From: Oikopleura dioica
Lineage: Eukaryota; Animalia; Chordata
DNA length: 64,000 nt
Direction: 5' to 3'
Assembly: GCA_907165135.1 (NCBI GenBank)
Contig: OU015567.1
Location: 6,262,001-6,326,000 of the forward strand
A program made the translations under genes and the position numbers. The first letter of the stretch is position 1, and each line of letters starts with the position of its first letter. This document shows positions 5,756-18,357 of the stretch, piece after piece. Below the pieces are notes generated by a model. The model saw nothing but the letters and a program-made list of their open reading frames with translations, had not been told where the DNA came from and searched no databases.

Positions 5756-7660
5756 TTAGGGTTCGTCGGAAGGCCGAAATCTTTCTTTTCTGAGCTCTCG
5801 TTTCAAGCTGAAGATTTGTTCTTCGAGAGCGCGCACTGAATCGACATGCTTTGACTTGAGCTGGTTTATTTCTTCTTCGAGAAATTTTTGCTCGTCCAGG
5901 CTGTGCGACAACTCGACTGCTTGCTGCGCAATGATAGCTTCTTTCTGCTTGATGACTTCGTTTTTTTCTTTAATTTCTTCGTTTTTTTCTTTGATTTCTT
6001 CGTTCTGACTCTCGATCACTTCAGTCTTCTGACGATTATCTTCGATGAGATTGTTACGACCAGTGATTCGAACGATTCTGTCGTCGATGAGCGCTCTAAA
6101 ACAAATGTGAGCTAGGCTAAATGATGATTATTTACCTGATCAATTGGGCGTTCAAATCTGCAGACTTCCCAAACGCCTCTGCGGATATTTTGATCAAATT
6201 CGCATTTTTAATTTCATCAGAAAGCGACCCTTCTTTTCCAATCATCCTCTTGGCGTTTTTTACAGAGCATTGGAAAGGTTTAGAAGTCGTATTCGCGGGA
6301 GTAACGGCGGACAATGGCGATCTAGCATCAGGTGTTGACGTTCTGGGTATTTGGGAAAAATTATCTTCGGAGAGAGGTGCCGAAGACTGTGATGGCGTTC
6401 GGATCAAATGAGGCATGCTTGGAGAAAGCAGCTCTCCTTCGGACGATAACTCCATGTTTGAGGGCGGACGACGCAAGTCTAGGCCAGGAAGGGACTCGTC
6501 TTCGCTGATGGGAGTATTGATCTCAAGATGATCATCATTTGCGTCGGAGGAAGTATGCGCCTTCTTAGAGCTACTTCCAACCTGATGTAAGGTCGATGAA
6601 CTTTGTCGCTTTGAGCCAAGAGGAATGAATACTTGAGTGTGAGGAGCTTGAAGGCGACGGGAGGTTCCAGGTTTATTGTTGTTTGGATGATCGAAGTCGA
6701 TGAACTGCTTTGGCAAAGATCCATTCTGGGAGTACGTCGATTCCGTAGAGTAGATTAGGTCGTTCAAGTCTTCTGTGTCACGAGGAATCACTTCGATGTC
6801 TGGAAGTTCGGGATCGACTGGTTCAGTCTTGAAAGCCTCAATTTCCTCGTTCATTTCGCGATGATTTGTATCGCGATGATGATTTGGAGCACGCTTTTCC
6901 AAGCTTTTTCTTGTGAAGAAGTAACTGTCCGGCGGGAAACAATTCGCGAATGAACGAAAGCAAGTCCTCATTTCCTTCACTACTCTTTCACTCGGTTGCG
7001 TTCCGTCACCGAGTGTAAACGTTCCGATACTTTTCAGGTCCTCCTTCATGTTGTGTTTGAAAAGCTTCTTCAAATAAGCCTCCTTTTCTTTGGGCACCTC
7101 AAACTGGAACACACATAGATTCTCTTCGATCGAAAAGCTTTCCGCGTAATTGAAGTTTGAACCATCAATTAGGCTAGTTCTCGTCCGGAGAAAGCTGAGA
7201 AAAGTTTCAAAGTTTAATAACGAGATGATATAAAGTTAACTAAATAAGAGACTTAGAAAATTAAATTTCCACTTCTTTTGAAACCATTCCTATCAATCGC
7301 CCTTGATTTCCAATCGAGGTCGACCTTCAGGAAGAACATATTCTCGAACTCTCCATCGTATTTTCGTACCGGGTAGAAAAGGCTCACTCGACGGCAAGCT
7401 TCGTATGGAATCCACAATTTACTGGGGATTTTTTCAATGGCGTCAGGCAAATATTTTCGAAATCGAGTGGGGATATCGATGTCGAACTGCCTGGGCGCCA
7501 CAGGACTGTGATAGAAGTAGATCCTATTGGAGTCTTCACAATGTCGTACAGCGTTGCCCAGGAAAATCTTCCGAAGCCTGAAGGAGGAGATCGTCGGCTC
7601 TGGCCCAAAGCGTCGATCATAAGACCGCCGATGATGAGACGGTTTTTGATGGTGGTGCAT
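5756..7660 (-). CDS. Uncharacterised protein: ordered N-terminal region, Ser/Pro-rich linker, C-terminal coiled coil (may be two genes)
   Basis: ORFs 7253-7660, 6132-7194 and 5756-~6100. The last two are joined by a GT-AG intron. The first joins in frame only through a GA donor at 7289 (intron 7195-7289). Confidence 0.6.
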
Positions 7661-7831: not shown

Positions 7832-9180
7832 CTAAGTTGCGTGTTCCCAGGTGTTGCCCTGGAGACTTTTGACATCGTTGGCCATCTCGAAGTCGGTGCT
7901 GGCTCCGACGTTGAGTGTTGAAAAGTCTAGTGTAGGCATGGATCTAGAATGAGAGTAAGAATGAGCGCTGAAAATTGCTCGTACTTGTTTCCATATCCTG
8001 GTGCTCCCATGCCGGTTTTGATCTGATTCGTCAAGCTCAACTGATGCGGCGTAAGTGGCGCGTCTCGAATGCTTCGGGAAGAATTCAGCGCCATCGCGAA
8101 CTGATTGATCGTCGCCGAGTTCATTTCGTAAGCAGCTGTATCGGTAGGCGGCTAGAAGAAAGAATTTAATTGAGAAAACCAGTGAAAAACTAAACCTTGA
8201 CTTGAATAGATCTTGATTGAGAACGAGACCTGGGCGCGGCCGATTGTGGCCTCGTGTATCGACTTCCCGTCGCAGTATTCGGCCGGCTTATGGTCACAGA
8301 TTTCTTTTGCGTCTTGGTACCGGTCTTTTTGAAATTCGAGTTGTCCAACACATTGTTACGGTGAATTTCAGTCGGATGAGGTGCATTTGAGCGCCATGGT
8401 GGAGGCTCCCAGACCTAAAAAGGACAGTGGTAAAGTTACTTTAGTTATTTTCAAACTTTTACCTTTGCTGGGGGCTTTTGCTTCTTGGGTTTCTTTGTCT
8501 CTCTCGCAGATTTGACCGGATCGGGGATGATCTCTCTTGGAACTGGCTTAACTGCTTGTTCAGTTACTTTCAAAATGTAGAAATGCTTCCAAGCGCCGTG
8601 CTCGAACTGGCTAAAATGAAGTGAATAAATAGCAGCGTTGGTGGATCTAGAAACGCGCGCATCTCCATCTCGAGAAGATCGCTCTTTTCTACGGTAGAAG
8701 CAGCTCACCTTGGCTTGTAGGGCGGGTACCAGCCGAAGCGCAAGCATTTTGGCCTCCAAAGTTCATCCGACTCACTCAGAAACTTCCAGTACCACGAAAC
8801 CTGAGCACATCGCGAAAGCGACCTCGGATCAAGGAACTTCAAGATGTGCAGCGATATCTTGCGAGGCAGCTGCCGAGAGAAATCAATTCTGTCCGTCGGA
8901 AAACGCTCGTCAAGCTTGTCTTGAAGGAGACGAATCTGCTTGTTTGTACAGACTCCTAATAGATTTCCCATAACTTCCGCCCTGAATCGGTTTTTTACGA
9001 AATTGAAATCAACAAGGAGGATTCCTGCCTTTGCTGGCCGTTCCATTTGCTCCACCACTTGGTGACTAAGTCCCTTCTTTCATGAAACATCTGCTCCTTA
9101 GCTTCCCCGTTCGACTGTGGCGTCCAAGTGGACATTTTAATCCCCACAGATTTCGACGTCCCATTCGGCCCAAACGACAT
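7832..9180 (-). CDS. FBXO16: F-box only protein 16
   Basis: KMSTWTP, WWSKWNGQQR, F-box LPRKISLHILKFLDPRSLSRCAQVSWYWK, WKHFYI and PPWRS motifs; one GC-AG intron at 8982-9028. Confidence 0.9.
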
Positions 9181-9445: not shown

Positions 9446-12400
9446 TTATTTCTTTTCTTCTTCATCCTCTGGAGAGTAGGCCGGACTAGCGGGGCTATAA
9501 GCCGGGCTAGATGGACTGAAAAGAATGGTAAATATTTGATGGTCGGCAGCTAAAAGTTTACCTGTACGCGGGAGAAGTCGGGCTATAACTTGGACTAGCA
9601 GGAGAATAGTTACTAGGTGAAGTAGGGGAGTAGCCGGATGGCGAAGCAGGGCTTTTGAAAATAGTAAGAAAGAGAGCTTAAAATTTTTGAAAACCTGTAT
9701 TGCGGACTGCTTGGTGAGTAATTAGGTGATGTTGGCGAGTAACTGGGACTGGCCGGTGAATAGGCGGGGCTTGAAGGACTGAATAGAAATTGATAGGAAG
9801 AAAAATTATGTAATTACGAACCTGTAATTGGGACTAGAGGGGGAGTAGGTTGGCGAAGTCGGTGAGTAAGCCTTCGATCCAGGAGTTCCTCCATCGCCGG
9901 GAGTGTATTTTGGTGAAGCGGGTGAATATGATGGCGAGGAGGGGCTGAAAAAGATAGAATACAGATAGACAAGGATGGCAGTGATACCTGTAGGTCGGGC
10001 TGTACTTGGGACTCGACGGGGTGTATGCTGGTGAAGAGGGGGAATACGAAGGCGATGTGGGGCTAAAAATTGGTAGGAAAGTACAAAATAGGGATAATCT
10101 AACCTGTAACTTGGTGACGTAGGGCTGTAATTCGGACTTGTCGGTGAGTAAGAGGGACTTGTCGGCGAATACGACGGCGATGTTGGCGAGTAGCTCGGCG
10201 AAGTTGGACTAGGGAAACGATTAAAGACGAGTTCTGAGATTGAAGTTTTACCTGTAGCTCGGGCTCGTGGGAGAGTAGCTCGGCGACGTCGGGCTATAAG
10301 ATGGCGATGTTGGCGAATAGCTCGGTGAGGTCGGCGAGTAACTGGGCGAAGTCGGAGAATAACTTGGCGAAGTCGGACTGTACGACGGACTGGTGGGACT
10401 GTAGCTCGGAGAAGTCGGACTATAGCTTGGTGAAGTGGGGCTATAGCTTGGCGATGTTGGTGAATAACTTGGAGACGTCGGGCTGTAAGATGGACTGGTT
10501 GGGCTGTAACTCGGAGATGTAGGCGAGTAGCTCGGTGATGTCGGCGAATAACCTGGCCCATCCGGTGAGTAGTTCGGCGAATATCCAGGAGACGCGCCAG
10601 CAGGACTCTGAGGCTGGTAATGCGGACTCTGTGGAATATCTCCGTGCCCGGGAGAGGGCATGAATGGTGATCGAGGCGACATCGCGCCAGGAGAAGCTCC
10701 GGGATAGTTGGGAGTGTAACCGGGCGAGAAGCTGACGTCTTCGCTCTGCGCGGGCGAGAACATACCACCAGGAGTAGCACCACCACGGGGAGTGTACGGC
10801 GTCCATCCAACACCAGAAGGCGTCGCACTTCCATCTGCCCACGGCATCGAAGGAGTAAACGAGCCGGAAGGAGACATTGCTCCGCCAAACATACCGCCCA
10901 TGAAGTTGCCACCGCCATTGCCAGGAACTTCCATCGCATCTTTACATTTTTCAACGTCGAGGACAAGCTGGAAGCAACCAGTTCCACCAGGAATTTGCTG
11001 CCCGAGCATGATGTTTTCAGAAACACCAGTAAGTGGGTCTACTTCTGCAGCAGCCGCAGCAGTCATTAAAATATCGACAGTTTCTTCAAAAGAGCATCGC
11101 ATGAGAGCACCAACGTCTTGTCGATTAACACCGTGTCGAGTAATAGCCATCAAGTGACCGCGCGAGGTCATGACATCGCACAACATAGACATGTGTCTGT
11201 AGTTGACATAAGAACCATCGAAAGAGATGACGTTCGTGATTTCTCGCTCGAGACATTTTCGGACAGCTTCAACACCAAGAATTTCGAAGCACTCGCAAAT
11301 ATCGTTAGAGCTCGTTCTAACAGTATCAATATCTCGCTGAGACAAAACTTTCATTAGCGCCGTTCCGTCAGTTTCAAGGATCCAGTCTTGCTGAGAAGCG
11401 AACTCGCCCTCTTTGTTGATGAAGATTTTCTTTTTCTCTTCTTCCTTTGGCAAGTTCATGTATACACGAGAAATGGATTCAATGCCCTGAAGAGTCATGT
11501 CGGACAAGATATTCGCCTCGATGTATCTCAAGAAGGTGTCGTCTTCCATCTTGTCTGCAGCTTCATCTTCGTCTTCAGCATCTTTTTGCTCGTTGTTCAT
11601 TATTCTGACTCGCAAGACCAGCTAAAAGTACGAATTTAACACTTATCTCGAGAAAGAAACTTTACCTTATCGGCGTTATCATCGTTGAAAATACAGTTGA
11701 GATCATCGCCAAATCCATGGTTGATCTTCTCTGAGATCTGTTCCATTGTCAACTTTTTGTCTGTCATCTTCTTGCGATCGAGCTCAATTCGAAGGAGCCA
11801 GGGAGAAATTCTACTGACATCGAAGTCGGGCATTTCGTAGTAAACTGAGACGAAATCCTGATCTTCTTCAATGACGGAGTTCATCGGATGCGGATCGTAG
11901 AAAATGGCCGTGTTCGCAGTGACGGTTTTCATTGTCGTGTGTTCAAGTCGGCAAAGGACATCTTTGCACATTTCCGCGTCACGCGCATGCTCGCCGAGGA
12001 GGAAGATGGTGACTGAAGGCGTCTTTGGCTTCTTGGTGATGTTGATCAACTCGTTGAGACGAGGGACACCAAGGGTGACGTTCTTCGCGGACACACCAGC
12101 ATAATGGAAAGTGTTCAAGGTCATCTGAGTGGCCGGTTCTCCCAAACTCTGGGCAGCAAGAGCACCAATCATTTCTCCTGGATGCGTGATGGCAGCGTTG
12201 AATTTTGACTCGATTTCACCAATGATGTAGTCGAATGCTTGTGAATTCAGGTAATACTCTTCAATGACACGCTTGGAGCACATGGTCGAGCGCATGTGAA
12301 TGTTGAACAACATAGTAGCGTTGTTCTGAGCTTCGATTGAGAGTGGATCAGTTCCGGACACTACGATAAGACGCTTTGTGAGCTCTTGGACATCCTCGAC

Positions 12401-15400
12401 GATCTTGATTGGGTCTAAGTCAGATTTAGTCTGCTTGGTGAGACTGTAGATTTTCTGAGCGTTGATGATCATGCGCTGCATGTTACAAGGTAGCGCGACT
12501 CGTGTTCGACCACGAGGGAAGATATTTCGCACTGTCTGTCGATCGATACAGAGCTGGTCAAACTCCTCGTCAACTTTGTTGTGGATTTCCGGGTTTGACT
12601 GAATTTCACGGACGACGTCTTCCTGGAGGCGTTTTCGAAGCGTCTTGTCGTTGGTATAGTCGAATCGGAACTTCTTTTCGAACATTCGATCAGAGAGCTT
12701 GATCGTGGACAAGTTCTGGAACTCGACGTGCTCACCGGCGAGACCGTCCTCACCGTATCGGAACTGGATAATGTTGTTGTTGGAAATACGGACTGTTCCG
12801 TCGTATCTGACAACTGCAGACTCCATAGCTTTGACCAGACGACGCTGGATGTAACCAGTTTCTGCAGTTTTGACGGCCGTATCGATCAAACCTTCTCGAC
12901 CTCCCATAGCGTGGAAGAAGAACTCAGTGGGAGTCAAACCGGCAAGGTAGGAGTTCTCGACGAAACCCTTCGATTCGGGTGAGTAATCATCCTTCAAGAA
13001 ATGTGGAAGGGTTCGATGCTCAAAGCCGAAAGGAATTCGCTTTCCTGAAACGTTCTGCTGACCGACGACAGCAATAATCTGCGAAATGTTAATCTTGGAT
13101 CCCTTTGAGCCAGCGTTGACCATGACTTTGAAACTGTTGAATTCGGACAGCGATTTTTGGGCGCAAGAACCAGTCTTGTCACGAGCGTCGTTGAGGATTC
13201 GATTGACCTTGTTTTCGAAGGTAGATCGAAGGGTGTTACCGGGAGTGGGGACGAGCTGATCATTGTGAGCTTGTTCGATGACGTCAAGCACTTCGGCCTT
13301 GGATTTTCGAATTTGCGCCTGGATTTCTTTGTATGTCTGTGCATCAGCAATTGTGTCTCCGATACCGATCGAGTGGCCCTCGATGAGCAGCCAATTGTTG
13401 ATAATTCGCTGGACGTCGCCAAAGAATCGTTTTGTGATTTCAGGGCCCTTTTCGTTGAAAATGACGTGAATGAGCGATCCAGACGATGCACCAAGCGTTT
13501 TCTTACAAACAATGCCCATCACGTGAACACCGTTGACGACTTCAACTCGCGTATCTCCAACTGAGATAAATTTGAATGGACCTTTGTCCTCGTCGTCCGG
13601 ATGCGTTGAGTGATGTCGAGTACAGTTGACTCCTTCTGGCACCATCATCGTGAAGAGCTGTTTTCCTGTCCAGAGGGGTCGTGGCTTGAGAATAGCTGGA
13701 ATAGGGACTCGTCCATCCCACATGGTCTTGAAGAGAACCAAGTTCATGAAATCGGATTTTTCAATGAAAGCATCACGCTTGGTCATCTTTCGCACAGCAG
13801 TTAGAGTATCCTGGACAATACCCATGACAGGTCGGTTACTTTGAGGAGTGACAACGAGTCGGGGGACAAGCGCGAGCTGGAGAATTTCAGCTCTCGTTTC
13901 CATCGACTGAGGAACGTGCAGATTCATTTCGTCTCCGTCAAAATCGGCGTTGTAGGGAGTAGTGACGGACAAGTTCAAACGGAAGGTCGACCAGGGAAGG
14001 ACTTTGACCAAGTGACCCATCATAGACATTTTATGCAGCGTCGGCTGTCGGTTGAAGATAATGACATCGTTGTCGCGGATGTGTCGCTCGACTTTGTAGC
14101 CGATTTGAAGATGCAGATCGGAGGGCTTTGGATGATAACGAAGATCAATACGCTCTCCAGTGTCTCGGATGATGTATTTGGCTCCGGGAAACTTGTTGCA
14201 GCCACGCTCAACAAGACGCTGAAGATGGTCGATGTTGAAAGGGGTCACAATTTCTGGATAGGTCAAGTTGCTGGCGATGGAACGCGGCACACCGACTTGA
14301 TTGATGTTCAAGTTAGGATCTCCTGTAATGACAGTACGCGCGGAGAAATCAACTCGCTTTCCCATCAAGTTTCCTCGAACTCGACCTTCTTTGGCTTTCA
14401 ATCTTTCTGAAATCGACTTGAGCGGTCGGCCTGACTTTTGCATCGATCGTGGCAAACCAGGGAGAGTGTTGTCCATCATTGTCGCCACGTGGAATTGCAA
14501 TTCGAGAACACCTTGTTCAAGAATATGCGCCGCAGCACCGGAGGCCTCGTTTCGGCGGAGCTCCGTATTGACTTTGATGATGTCTGAGTATTTGTGCGTC
14601 ACATCATCCTGGCATCGCAAGCCAGAGCCACCCATGACGACGGATGGTCGAACACAAAGAGGAGCAACGGGCAGGACAGAAATAATCATCCACTCTGGTC
14701 GGGCATACTTGCAGTCCATTCCCAACATTTCAATTTCCTCGTCAGAGATGTTTTTGAAGACTTCAAGGACGCGTTCCGCCGTTACTGTGATTTTCTTCTC
14801 TTGGGTGTCTTCGTTGAGCTTCTTCCATTCAGCCGTGAGCTGGATTCCTGTTCGCCGGTAAATAGGCTGGTGACGACCACAACCGCCATGAGAGGGCTTT
14901 TTGTTCTCATCTGTTGGTTCTCCGTTGTCTTTTTTCTCTGAGAAATCTCCGTCGATTTCGTCACCGCCTTCACAAATGTTCTTTCCTTTGCAGAGATCGT
15001 ACACTCCATCAAGTCGTTTTCTAGGAGTTCCCGCTGTTCTCGCGAGAATGCTTTGCATCTTCGGGTTGTTCTTGTCCACGAGCACCTTTGAGCAGTAGAA
15101 ACAGATGCATCGAAGGATTCGAAGCGTTTTGTTGAAGAAACCAACGTGGAAGACTGGTTTCGCGAGCTCAATATGGCCGAAATGACCAGGGCAATCGTTC
15201 ATGTTTCCAGCGCATGTTTGACAGCGCGAGAATCTGTCGCTTACTCCCTTATTCCGTTTTTAGAGAGGAATTCATATGTTGCTTTTTACCTGTCGGGGAT
15301 CCATGATACCACCGAGCTTTGGCTTTCCATTCTCAGTCGATTCTGGATACATGATGCCGTCTGAGTGCGGCGGCACTGTAACCGACATTCGTTTGATTTC

Positions 15401-15469
15401 ATCCGGGCTCAGAATCCCAAACTGAACCCGTTTGATTTTTCGGAGCGTTACGGAAGACTCGCTCTGCAT
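9446..15469 (-). CDS. POLR2A: RNA polymerase II largest subunit (RPB1)
   Basis: CPGHFGH, NADFDGD and trigger-loop TQMTLNTFH motifs and a YSPTSPS CTD; introns at 15248-15289, 11622-11665 and six within the CTD; ends [13 protein letters not shown] at 9446. Confidence 0.99.
9480..10550 (-). repeat. Coding heptad repeats of the Pol II CTD (~36 units) split by six introns
   Basis: 14 uninterrupted YSPTSPS units at 10550-10257, then degenerate units in exons of 105, 75, 123, 84 and 90 nt plus a terminal exon. Confidence 0.95.

Positions 15470-15683: not shown

Positions 15684-18357
<2,674 letters not shown>

Follow-up and report, generated by a model that had tools for sequence, protein, structure and literature searches.

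In RPB1, a subunit of RNA polymerase II, the C-terminal domain (CTD) is encoded in Oikopleura dioica by heptad codons that are interrupted by six introns, all of which lie at the identical position of the repeat. The gene is located on the minus strand of a 64,000-nucleotide (nt) stretch of contig OU015567.1 (positions 6,262,001 to 6,326,000; the whole stretch is referred to below as the window), and its CTD coding region, including the six introns, extends over positions 9449-10583. These are probably six ordinary spliceosomal introns that are constitutively spliced; their shared site would reflect a hot spot within the heptad combined with multiplication of an intron-bearing block, and the symmetry of the exons between them would be a by-product.

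Intron positions in the RPB1 tail

A gene model derived from the window sequence places the ATG of RPB1 at position 15469 and the end of its stop codon at 9446. The gene (9446-15469, minus strand) is composed of nine exons and encodes 1892 amino acids (aa). Its translation is identical to the annotated protein P0001 (Oikopleura dioica OKI2018_I69 chr2 g5675, DNA-directed RNA polymerase subunit), in which all RPB1 Pfam domains are present, and the gene is the RPB1 of the Okinawa lineage of O. dioica. It contains eight introns, two in the core and six in the CTD, all of the GT-AG type and 41-46 nt in length. The six CTD introns are placed within the final 547 nt of the coding sequence, and the 5.1 kb upstream of CTD intron 1 hold the other two. 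The CTD itself comprises 39 Y-S-P units, with 14 consensus YSPTSPS heptads that give way to a degenerate distal portion and then to an acidic tail.

CTD intron 1 (10209-10251; 43 nt) reads TACAG|GTAAAA..CCTAG|TCC. The same heptad site is occupied by introns 2 (10063-10103; 41 nt), 3 (9945-9987; 43 nt), 4 (9779-9821; 43 nt), 5 (9652-9694; 43 nt) and 6 (9516-9561; 46 nt), all on the minus strand. In each of the six cases TACAG precedes the intron and YCC (Y, pyrimidine) follows it, and the Ser2 codon (AGY) located directly behind Tyr1 is split in phase 2. All have the features of U2-type GT-AG introns: they begin with GT, end with AG and restore the reading frame upon removal. Their sequences are mutually dissimilar (pairwise z of -1.1 to 2.1 relative to shuffles). 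Of the Tyr-Ser2 pairs with an AGY codon, another eleven carry no intron, namely six of the form TACAGY and five of the form TATAGY. A preliminary description of this DNA, made from the letters alone, had reported six mutually dissimilar GT-AG introns of 41-46 nt at a phase-2 TAC-AG|Y-CC site in the Ser2 codon, and uninterrupted TAC-AGY codons elsewhere in the CTD; it proved correct on each of these points, and the coordinates of all six introns were exact to the base.

The five internal CTD exons (10104-10208, 9988-10062, 9822-9944, 9695-9778 and 9562-9651; overall span 9562-10208, minus strand) run from phase 2 to phase 2 and measure 105, 75, 123, 84 and 90 nt, respectively. Loss of any single one of them in silico preserved both the frame and the Y-S-P junction, in agreement with the earlier observation that their sizes are multiples of 3. 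Retention of CTD intron 1 produces TAC AGG TAA, which is the stop after 14 consensus heptads that had also been predicted, and retention of any CTD intron leads to a stop or a frameshift and not to a shortened functional tail. Since all introns occupy one repeat position, symmetric exon frames and restoration of Y-S-P arise automatically and are no sign of cassette use.

The CTD intron pattern is real, but the degree of surprise it merits depends strongly on how far the exon sequence restricts intron sites. With introns distributed uniformly over the 21-nt repeat, the probability of one shared position for all six is (1/21)^5 = 2.4e-7. If any AGY serine codon is eligible (17 Ser2, 13 Ser5 and 15 Ser7), p is 0.0004-0.002, and if solely CAG| sites are eligible it is 0.004-0.035. 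None of the six introns is found at the 28 AGY codons for Ser5 and Ser7 (13 + 15), and use of the codons is not proportional to their number (p = 0.0004-0.002). The introns are also clustered: the final 9.6% of the coding sequence holds six of the eight RPB1 introns (p = 1.9e-5), which corresponds to an intron density in the CTD about 20-fold over that of the core. The degenerate distal CTD accommodates all six, and the homogeneous proximal array is free of introns (p = 0.03).

Occurrence in appendicularians and in unrelated eukaryotes

Contigs of close relatives were reached through the protein cluster of P0001, which held open reading frame (ORF) fragments of marine metagenomes and led to two further lineages of O. 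dioica, termed B (contigs L001-L006) and C (contig L008). All six CTD intron positions are kept in both. The CTD exons of the window and of lineages B and C are 84-86% identical, while the orthologous introns are at the level of shuffled sequence (z ~0). Since the similarity of orthologous introns is already down to chance from one lineage to the next, the dissimilarity of the six introns within the window is uninformative as to their common origin.

More distant species were recovered by a second protein search, which yielded ORFs of 71-79% identity whose last residues are ...SPSYR, the read-through of TAC-AG|GT; one more contig was added by a metagenome scan. A tree of the last core domain unites these species with O. 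dioica (support 100/99) and places the group as sister to Ciona (100/98-99), with poorly resolved inner branching. On account of this grouping, the metagenome species D, E, F, G and I are treated here as presumptive appendicularians. Orthologues of CTD introns 1 and 3-6 were identified in species D (L013), of introns 3-6 in species E (L014/L015), and of introns 3 and 5 in species I (L026), in which the intron 4 site is the uninterrupted sequence TACAGTCC. Intron 1 is thus common to lineages B and C and species D, introns 3 and 5 to species D, E and I, and introns 4 and 6 to species D and E, while intron 2 was found only in the O. dioica complex. Species F and G have further CTD introns at TAYAG|GT. 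Every CTD intron of the appendicularian-like species is located at TAYAG|GT..AG|YCC, and no intron was found at the Ser5 and Ser7 AGY codons of any appendicularian species examined. Species D lacks intron 2, although its heptad count at this site equals that of O. dioica; presence or absence of the intron at constant heptad number indicates a precise gain or loss and not the copying of a block.

Exact spliced mapping of annotated proteins to genomes placed 26 introns in Branchiostoma, 21 in Nematostella and 28 in a bird, none of them in the CTD; these were the three outgroups used for this check, and the Ciona entries P0019 and P0054, truncated proteins present only in UniRef, were left out. 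None of the O. dioica RPB1 intron positions is ancestral by comparison with amphioxus, Nematostella and the bird. The core introns differ among all appendicularian-like species compared, so the CTD introns are the sole conserved introns of the gene in the sampled appendicularians. As judged by their positions in these contigs, the six CTD introns are shown to be old and stable. The recent gain considered in the preliminary description is refuted, as the positions are common to other O. dioica lineages and to other appendicularian-like species.

Two database entries were discarded from these comparisons. The RPB1 model of Takifugu bimaculatus (P0029/L010) was dropped, as part of its CTD is out of frame (LLPHLP... 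runs) and contains two false CTD “introns”. In P0139/L018, which was not used, the CTD runs into non-coding sequence without a GT, probably at an assembly break. The species D orthologue of intron 1 (L013:5986-6325) is 340 nt long instead of approximately 45 nt. It contains a foldback with imperfect inverted arms of 45 nt (5989-6033 and 6237-6281), which starts 3 nt past the donor. This looks like a miniature inverted-repeat transposable element (MITE) nested in a minimal intron, of which approximately 47 nt of ordinary intron would remain.

Unrelated RPB1 loci were collected in a metagenome scan, and distinct introns (CTD or linker) were counted per group. An intron at TAYAG|GT..AG|CCC within the Ser2 codon was identified in plant-like contigs (L057-L069, L073-75, L080, L090 and L093), in L046/47, in the GC-rich contigs L076/78 and in the animal-like contig L070, where it sits in a heptad-like linker unit. 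The plant-like contigs, named for their resemblance to the tail of Arabidopsis NRPB1, are 74-98% identical within the group, and a moss-like subgroup of them has one extra intron at Ser5. These eukaryotes (plant-like, L046, L076, L070) have one intron each at this site and mostly one or two CTD introns, not six. An intron-dense CTD resembling that of O. dioica was found in L034 (2600-3619; AT-rich, animal-like), which contains at least six CTD introns of 53-60 nt. Unlike the O. dioica introns, these are distributed over four heptad positions: one in codon 2 phase 2, three one base earlier (codon 2 phase 1), one in Ser5 phase 2 and one in codon 7 phase 1. Uniformity of the site is therefore peculiar to the appendicularians.

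Altogether, five of the 11 distinct introns of unrelated eukaryotes are positioned exactly at the Tyr1/Ser2 boundary in phase 2 and eight of the 11 in codon 2 (p = 9e-5 under uniformity). On this sequence evidence, the Tyr1/Ser2 boundary appears to be a preferred CTD intron site in general, i.e. a proto-splice hot spot. The preference is likely to arise because, among the sequences open to the heptad without a change in the protein, TAY followed by AGY comes closest to an exonic YAG|. A heptad-compatible CAG can be formed without such a change from TAC+AGY, ACC+AGY or CCC+AGY, and in no other way.

RNA evidence and surroundings of the gene

Two sequences, L007 (lineage B, with a full-length ORF of 1894 aa) and L021 (lineage C), are intron-free and contain all six CTD junctions as exact 30-40-mers, with no unspliced donor. 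Most simply, both are metatranscriptome complementary DNA (cDNA). For the window's own lineage, we infer exon-exon junctions in RNA from the annotation only. RNA reads were available from four runs that represent a lineage-B-like animal, 90-95% alike to the window, and they bear on introns 4-6. The joint of intron 6 (9515>9562) was present in 17, 20, 48 and 7 reads in the four runs, and that of intron 5 (9651>9695) in 15, 18 and 45 reads in three of them. The intron 4 joint (9777>9825 with GCTA between) was supported by 4 and 6 reads, and more spliced reads were observed as loose ends; this joint reveals TATAG|C in the other lineage in place of the TACAG|T of the window. No exon-skipping joint reached the threshold of three reads in the four runs, which cover exons 6-9 with other-lineage reads of modest depth. 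The preliminary description had proposed that splicing tunes the length of the CTD from approximately 36 down to approximately 17 heptads. This proposal is unsupported, given the cDNA-like contigs with all six junctions, the constitutive joints at introns 4-6 and the lack of a skipping joint among these reads.

Both core introns of the window gene are in phase 0 and located on the minus strand. Core intron A (15248-15289; 42 nt) follows aa 60, at a position that is not ancestral metazoan according to the amphioxus, Nematostella and bird maps, and core intron B (11622-11665; 44 nt) follows aa 1254 and is not common to the other appendicularian-like species. Residues 61-1254 of the core are encoded by a single exon of 3582 nt (11666-15247, minus strand), from which all 21-28 ancestral metazoan introns are gone. 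Core intron A ends in AAG and not YAG, as do two of the six CTD introns of lineage C (L008:6327-6366 and 6861-6901), which fits a permissive acceptor requirement.

The acidic C-terminal tail reads EDEEEKK in the window versus EDEDENKK in lineages B and C. The 3′ untranslated region diverges between the window and L001/L008 right after the stop codon, and a block further downstream (CGTCGAGCTATTTAT...GCTCCGAGCT) is kept in all three lineages. Upstream of RPB1, ORFs on the same strand with MCM-helicase-like motifs (15945-18357, minus strand) end approximately 500 nt before its ATG. Downstream, another gene on the same strand (8705-9180, minus strand) starts approximately 270 nt after the RPB1 stop codon, and its orthologue on L008 has an F-box according to a Pfam match. 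Such tight same-strand flanking could be an operon-like packing.

Origin of the introns and its meaning

Several observations concern the duplication of heptad blocks. The proximal CTD contains a higher-order repeat (10306-10552, minus strand) with a unit of 105 nt, i.e. five heptads (Tandem Repeats Finder: period 105, 2.3 copies, 75% matches), and blocks of five heptads share 72-76% identity at lag 5. This repeat, of which exon 2 is not a clear member, indicates that multi-heptad blocks do duplicate in RPB1. In the distal part, successive introns are separated by 5, 3, 4, 4 and 4 heptads (p ~0.001). The distal heptads fall into blocks that keep register with the introns: by the residue at heptad position 4, intron 3 is followed by S-A-(insert)-T-S, intron 4 by S-A-T-S and intron 6 by S-A-end. 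Taken together, the sequence pattern is suggestive of multiplication of an intron-bearing block of approximately four heptads as a second ingredient beside the hot spot. As a hot spot alone leaves the density, the even spacing and the unused Ser5 and Ser7 codons unexplained, block multiplication is a reasonable addition.

We propose the following course of events. The codons of the heptad would offer one favoured proto-splice site, TAY+AGY giving YAG|Y, and introns would have been gained or tolerated mainly there, so that each splits the Ser2 AGY codon after its second base (TAY-AG|GT...AG|Y-CC). An intron-bearing block of approximately four heptads may also have been multiplied in the degenerate distal CTD, which would account for the regularity of the spacing and for the very high intron density in this part. 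The in-frame, Y-S-P-restoring exons would follow from the single repeat position and would not constitute a device for tuning CTD length.

Several findings weigh against parts of this proposal. Compared with other Tyr-Ser2 junctions, the windows around the six intron-bearing ones show no greater likeness in DNA (p = 0.12-0.42), the A-T-A-T block behind intron 5 departs from the S-A-T-S pattern, and gain or loss of intron 2 at constant heptad number speaks against block copy. A proto-splice site alone predicts some introns at the 13 Ser5 and 15 Ser7 AGY codons, yet these are unused, even though Ser5 is usable elsewhere, as in L034 and the moss-like group. As regards constitutive splicing, the RNA reads extend upstream only to approximately 9930. 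In run X9 (oligo-dT), introns 4 and 5 had unspliced reads (4, and as many as 8) next to 18 and 4 spliced reads, while the other runs had none; these could be pre-mRNA, genomic DNA or retention. Finally, the sole conserved introns of the gene could be kept by selection for a reason that is not apparent in the present data.

The two components of the proposal may also be considered separately. Under duplication alone, a single gain in a distal heptad block would have been followed by tandem duplication to six copies, with subsequent erasure of similarity, and present-day absences would be precise losses. This accounts for the identical site, the regular spacing and the 20-fold local excess in density, and for the start of the S-A-T-S, S-A-T-S and S-A blocks at introns 3, 4 and 6; it also agrees with the existence of multi-heptad duplications in RPB1 and with the saturation of intron sequence even between lineages. 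Nevertheless, the flanking exons exhibit no significant DNA-level paralogy, block 5 is off the pattern, the heptad count of O. dioica, which has intron 2, equals that of species D, which lacks it, and duplication is not needed to explain a position that unrelated eukaryotes have used independently. We consider duplication as the whole explanation unlikely. Much the same can be said of independent gains alone, i.e. separate insertions during appendicularian intron turnover, each of which landed or survived at TAY-AG|Y. The hot spot has been used in at least five unrelated lineages, sites 1, 2, 4 and 6 vary among species without a change in heptad number, and the rate of intron gain in Oikopleura is high (PMC4122922). 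However, the presence of six of eight introns in 10% of the coding sequence, their even spacing, and the lack of use of the Ser5/Ser7 AGY sites and of six proximal TACAGY sites are left unexplained, so this is a doubtful account when taken on its own. Both origins offered in the preliminary description, gain at CAG proto-splice sites and duplication of an intron-bearing unit, are viable, the former strengthened by the unrelated eukaryotes and the latter by the spacing and the S-A-T-S blocks; the DNA-level test of paralogy was not significant. We give roughly equal weight to a mostly duplicative and a mostly repeated-gain history, and favour a mixture of the two.

Another possibility is that selection, or a mechanical barrier, keeps the introns in place for reasons that have nothing to do with isoforms. 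They might interrupt a recombination-prone array, escape clean cDNA-mediated loss because they lie in repeats, or meet an expression need of a long gene that is nearly devoid of introns. This agrees with the conservation of these introns, and of no others in the gene, across the appendicularians sampled, and with their restriction to the degenerate distal part and absence from the homogeneous proximal array; on the other hand, introns 1, 2, 4 and 6 are dispensable in some species, and this explanation appears rather improbable. We give very little credence to regulated cassettes, in which exon skipping or intron retention would tune the length or composition of the CTD and the status of splicing would feed back on RNA polymerase II. 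All internal exons are in frame with Y-S-P restored on removal, the CTD positions persisted through the turnover of every other intron in the gene, and run X9 provided a few unspliced reads. Nonetheless, no skipping joint at introns 4-6 reached the threshold, the only messenger-like contigs assembled have their full length and carry each of the six junctions, retention results in a stop or frameshift, and exon symmetry is automatic. It is equally far-fetched that the introns are conserved because they are used, with stage- or tissue-specific retention or skipping tying RPB1 output or CTD length to splicing capacity and thereby closing a loop between spliceosome and polymerase.

Three other models were rejected. 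Transposon-derived introns (of the introner or MITE type) do not match introns of 41-46 nt that are mutually unlike, and the sole foldback seen is the one nested in intron 1 of species D. Intronization of two heptads (42 nt) is contradicted by the intron lengths, which range over 39-46 nt within O. dioica and 44-73 nt outside it, are not multiples of three and match the usual minimal intron of the genome. The AGGT tandem-duplication model of Rogers does not apply, as the spliced junction is AG|YCC and not AG|GT.

The component phenomena are familiar: proto-splice bias with parallel gain, repeat-locked introns, and intron turnover in Oikopleura. The proto-splice-site model, which was reportedly put forward by Dibb and Newman in 1989, places introns preferentially at MAG|R-like exon sequences. 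The six CTD introns and many unrelated CTD introns likewise follow an exonic YAG, but the base after the CTD intron is a pyrimidine and not a purine, and the Ser5 and Ser7 versions of the site are unused in appendicularians. In fibrillar collagen genes, 54-bp exons begin with an intact Gly codon, and the repeat-locked introns arose by exon or block duplication. The CTD introns also occupy a fixed position of a short peptide repeat and delimit exons of whole codons; these mostly correspond to whole repeats (105 and 84 nt), and others contain odd-length units. In contrast to collagen, the paralogy of CTD blocks is only hinted at by residue pattern and spacing, the DNA-level tests being non-significant.

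The genome of O. dioica is characterized by extreme intron turnover, very short introns (peaking at 47 bp) and mostly lineage-specific intron positions (PMC4122922). The eight RPB1 introns follow this trend in their lengths of 41-46 nt and in positions that are absent from amphioxus, bird and Nematostella. The CTD introns deviate from it, since they are stable across lineages and species, whereas the core introns of the same gene are not. No paper describing CTD intron positions was found; older plant and animal RPB1 gene-structure papers were outside the search, and a prior description is possible, especially for plants.

The points of interest are the uniformity of the site, its recurrence across eukaryotes and its persistence in a gene whose other introns were replaced. 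Given the turnover of every other RPB1 intron in the lineage, the stability of the CTD introns is a small unexplained fact. The case also calls for caution, as in-frame, junction-restoring exons resemble regulatory cassettes yet arise automatically from a shared repeat position. Gene models of the CTD are easily mis-annotated, as illustrated by the frameshifted Takifugu model, and knowledge of the preferred intron site helps in their annotation; the existence of a CTD intron hot spot is directly testable across annotated RPB1 genes. A coding repeat of 21 nt offers the same sites 39 times, six introns pick one of them, and the choice recurs in plants, protists and other animals. The RPB1 tail is in this respect a natural case for two old questions, namely how far exon sequence dictates the sites of introns and how repeats multiply them.

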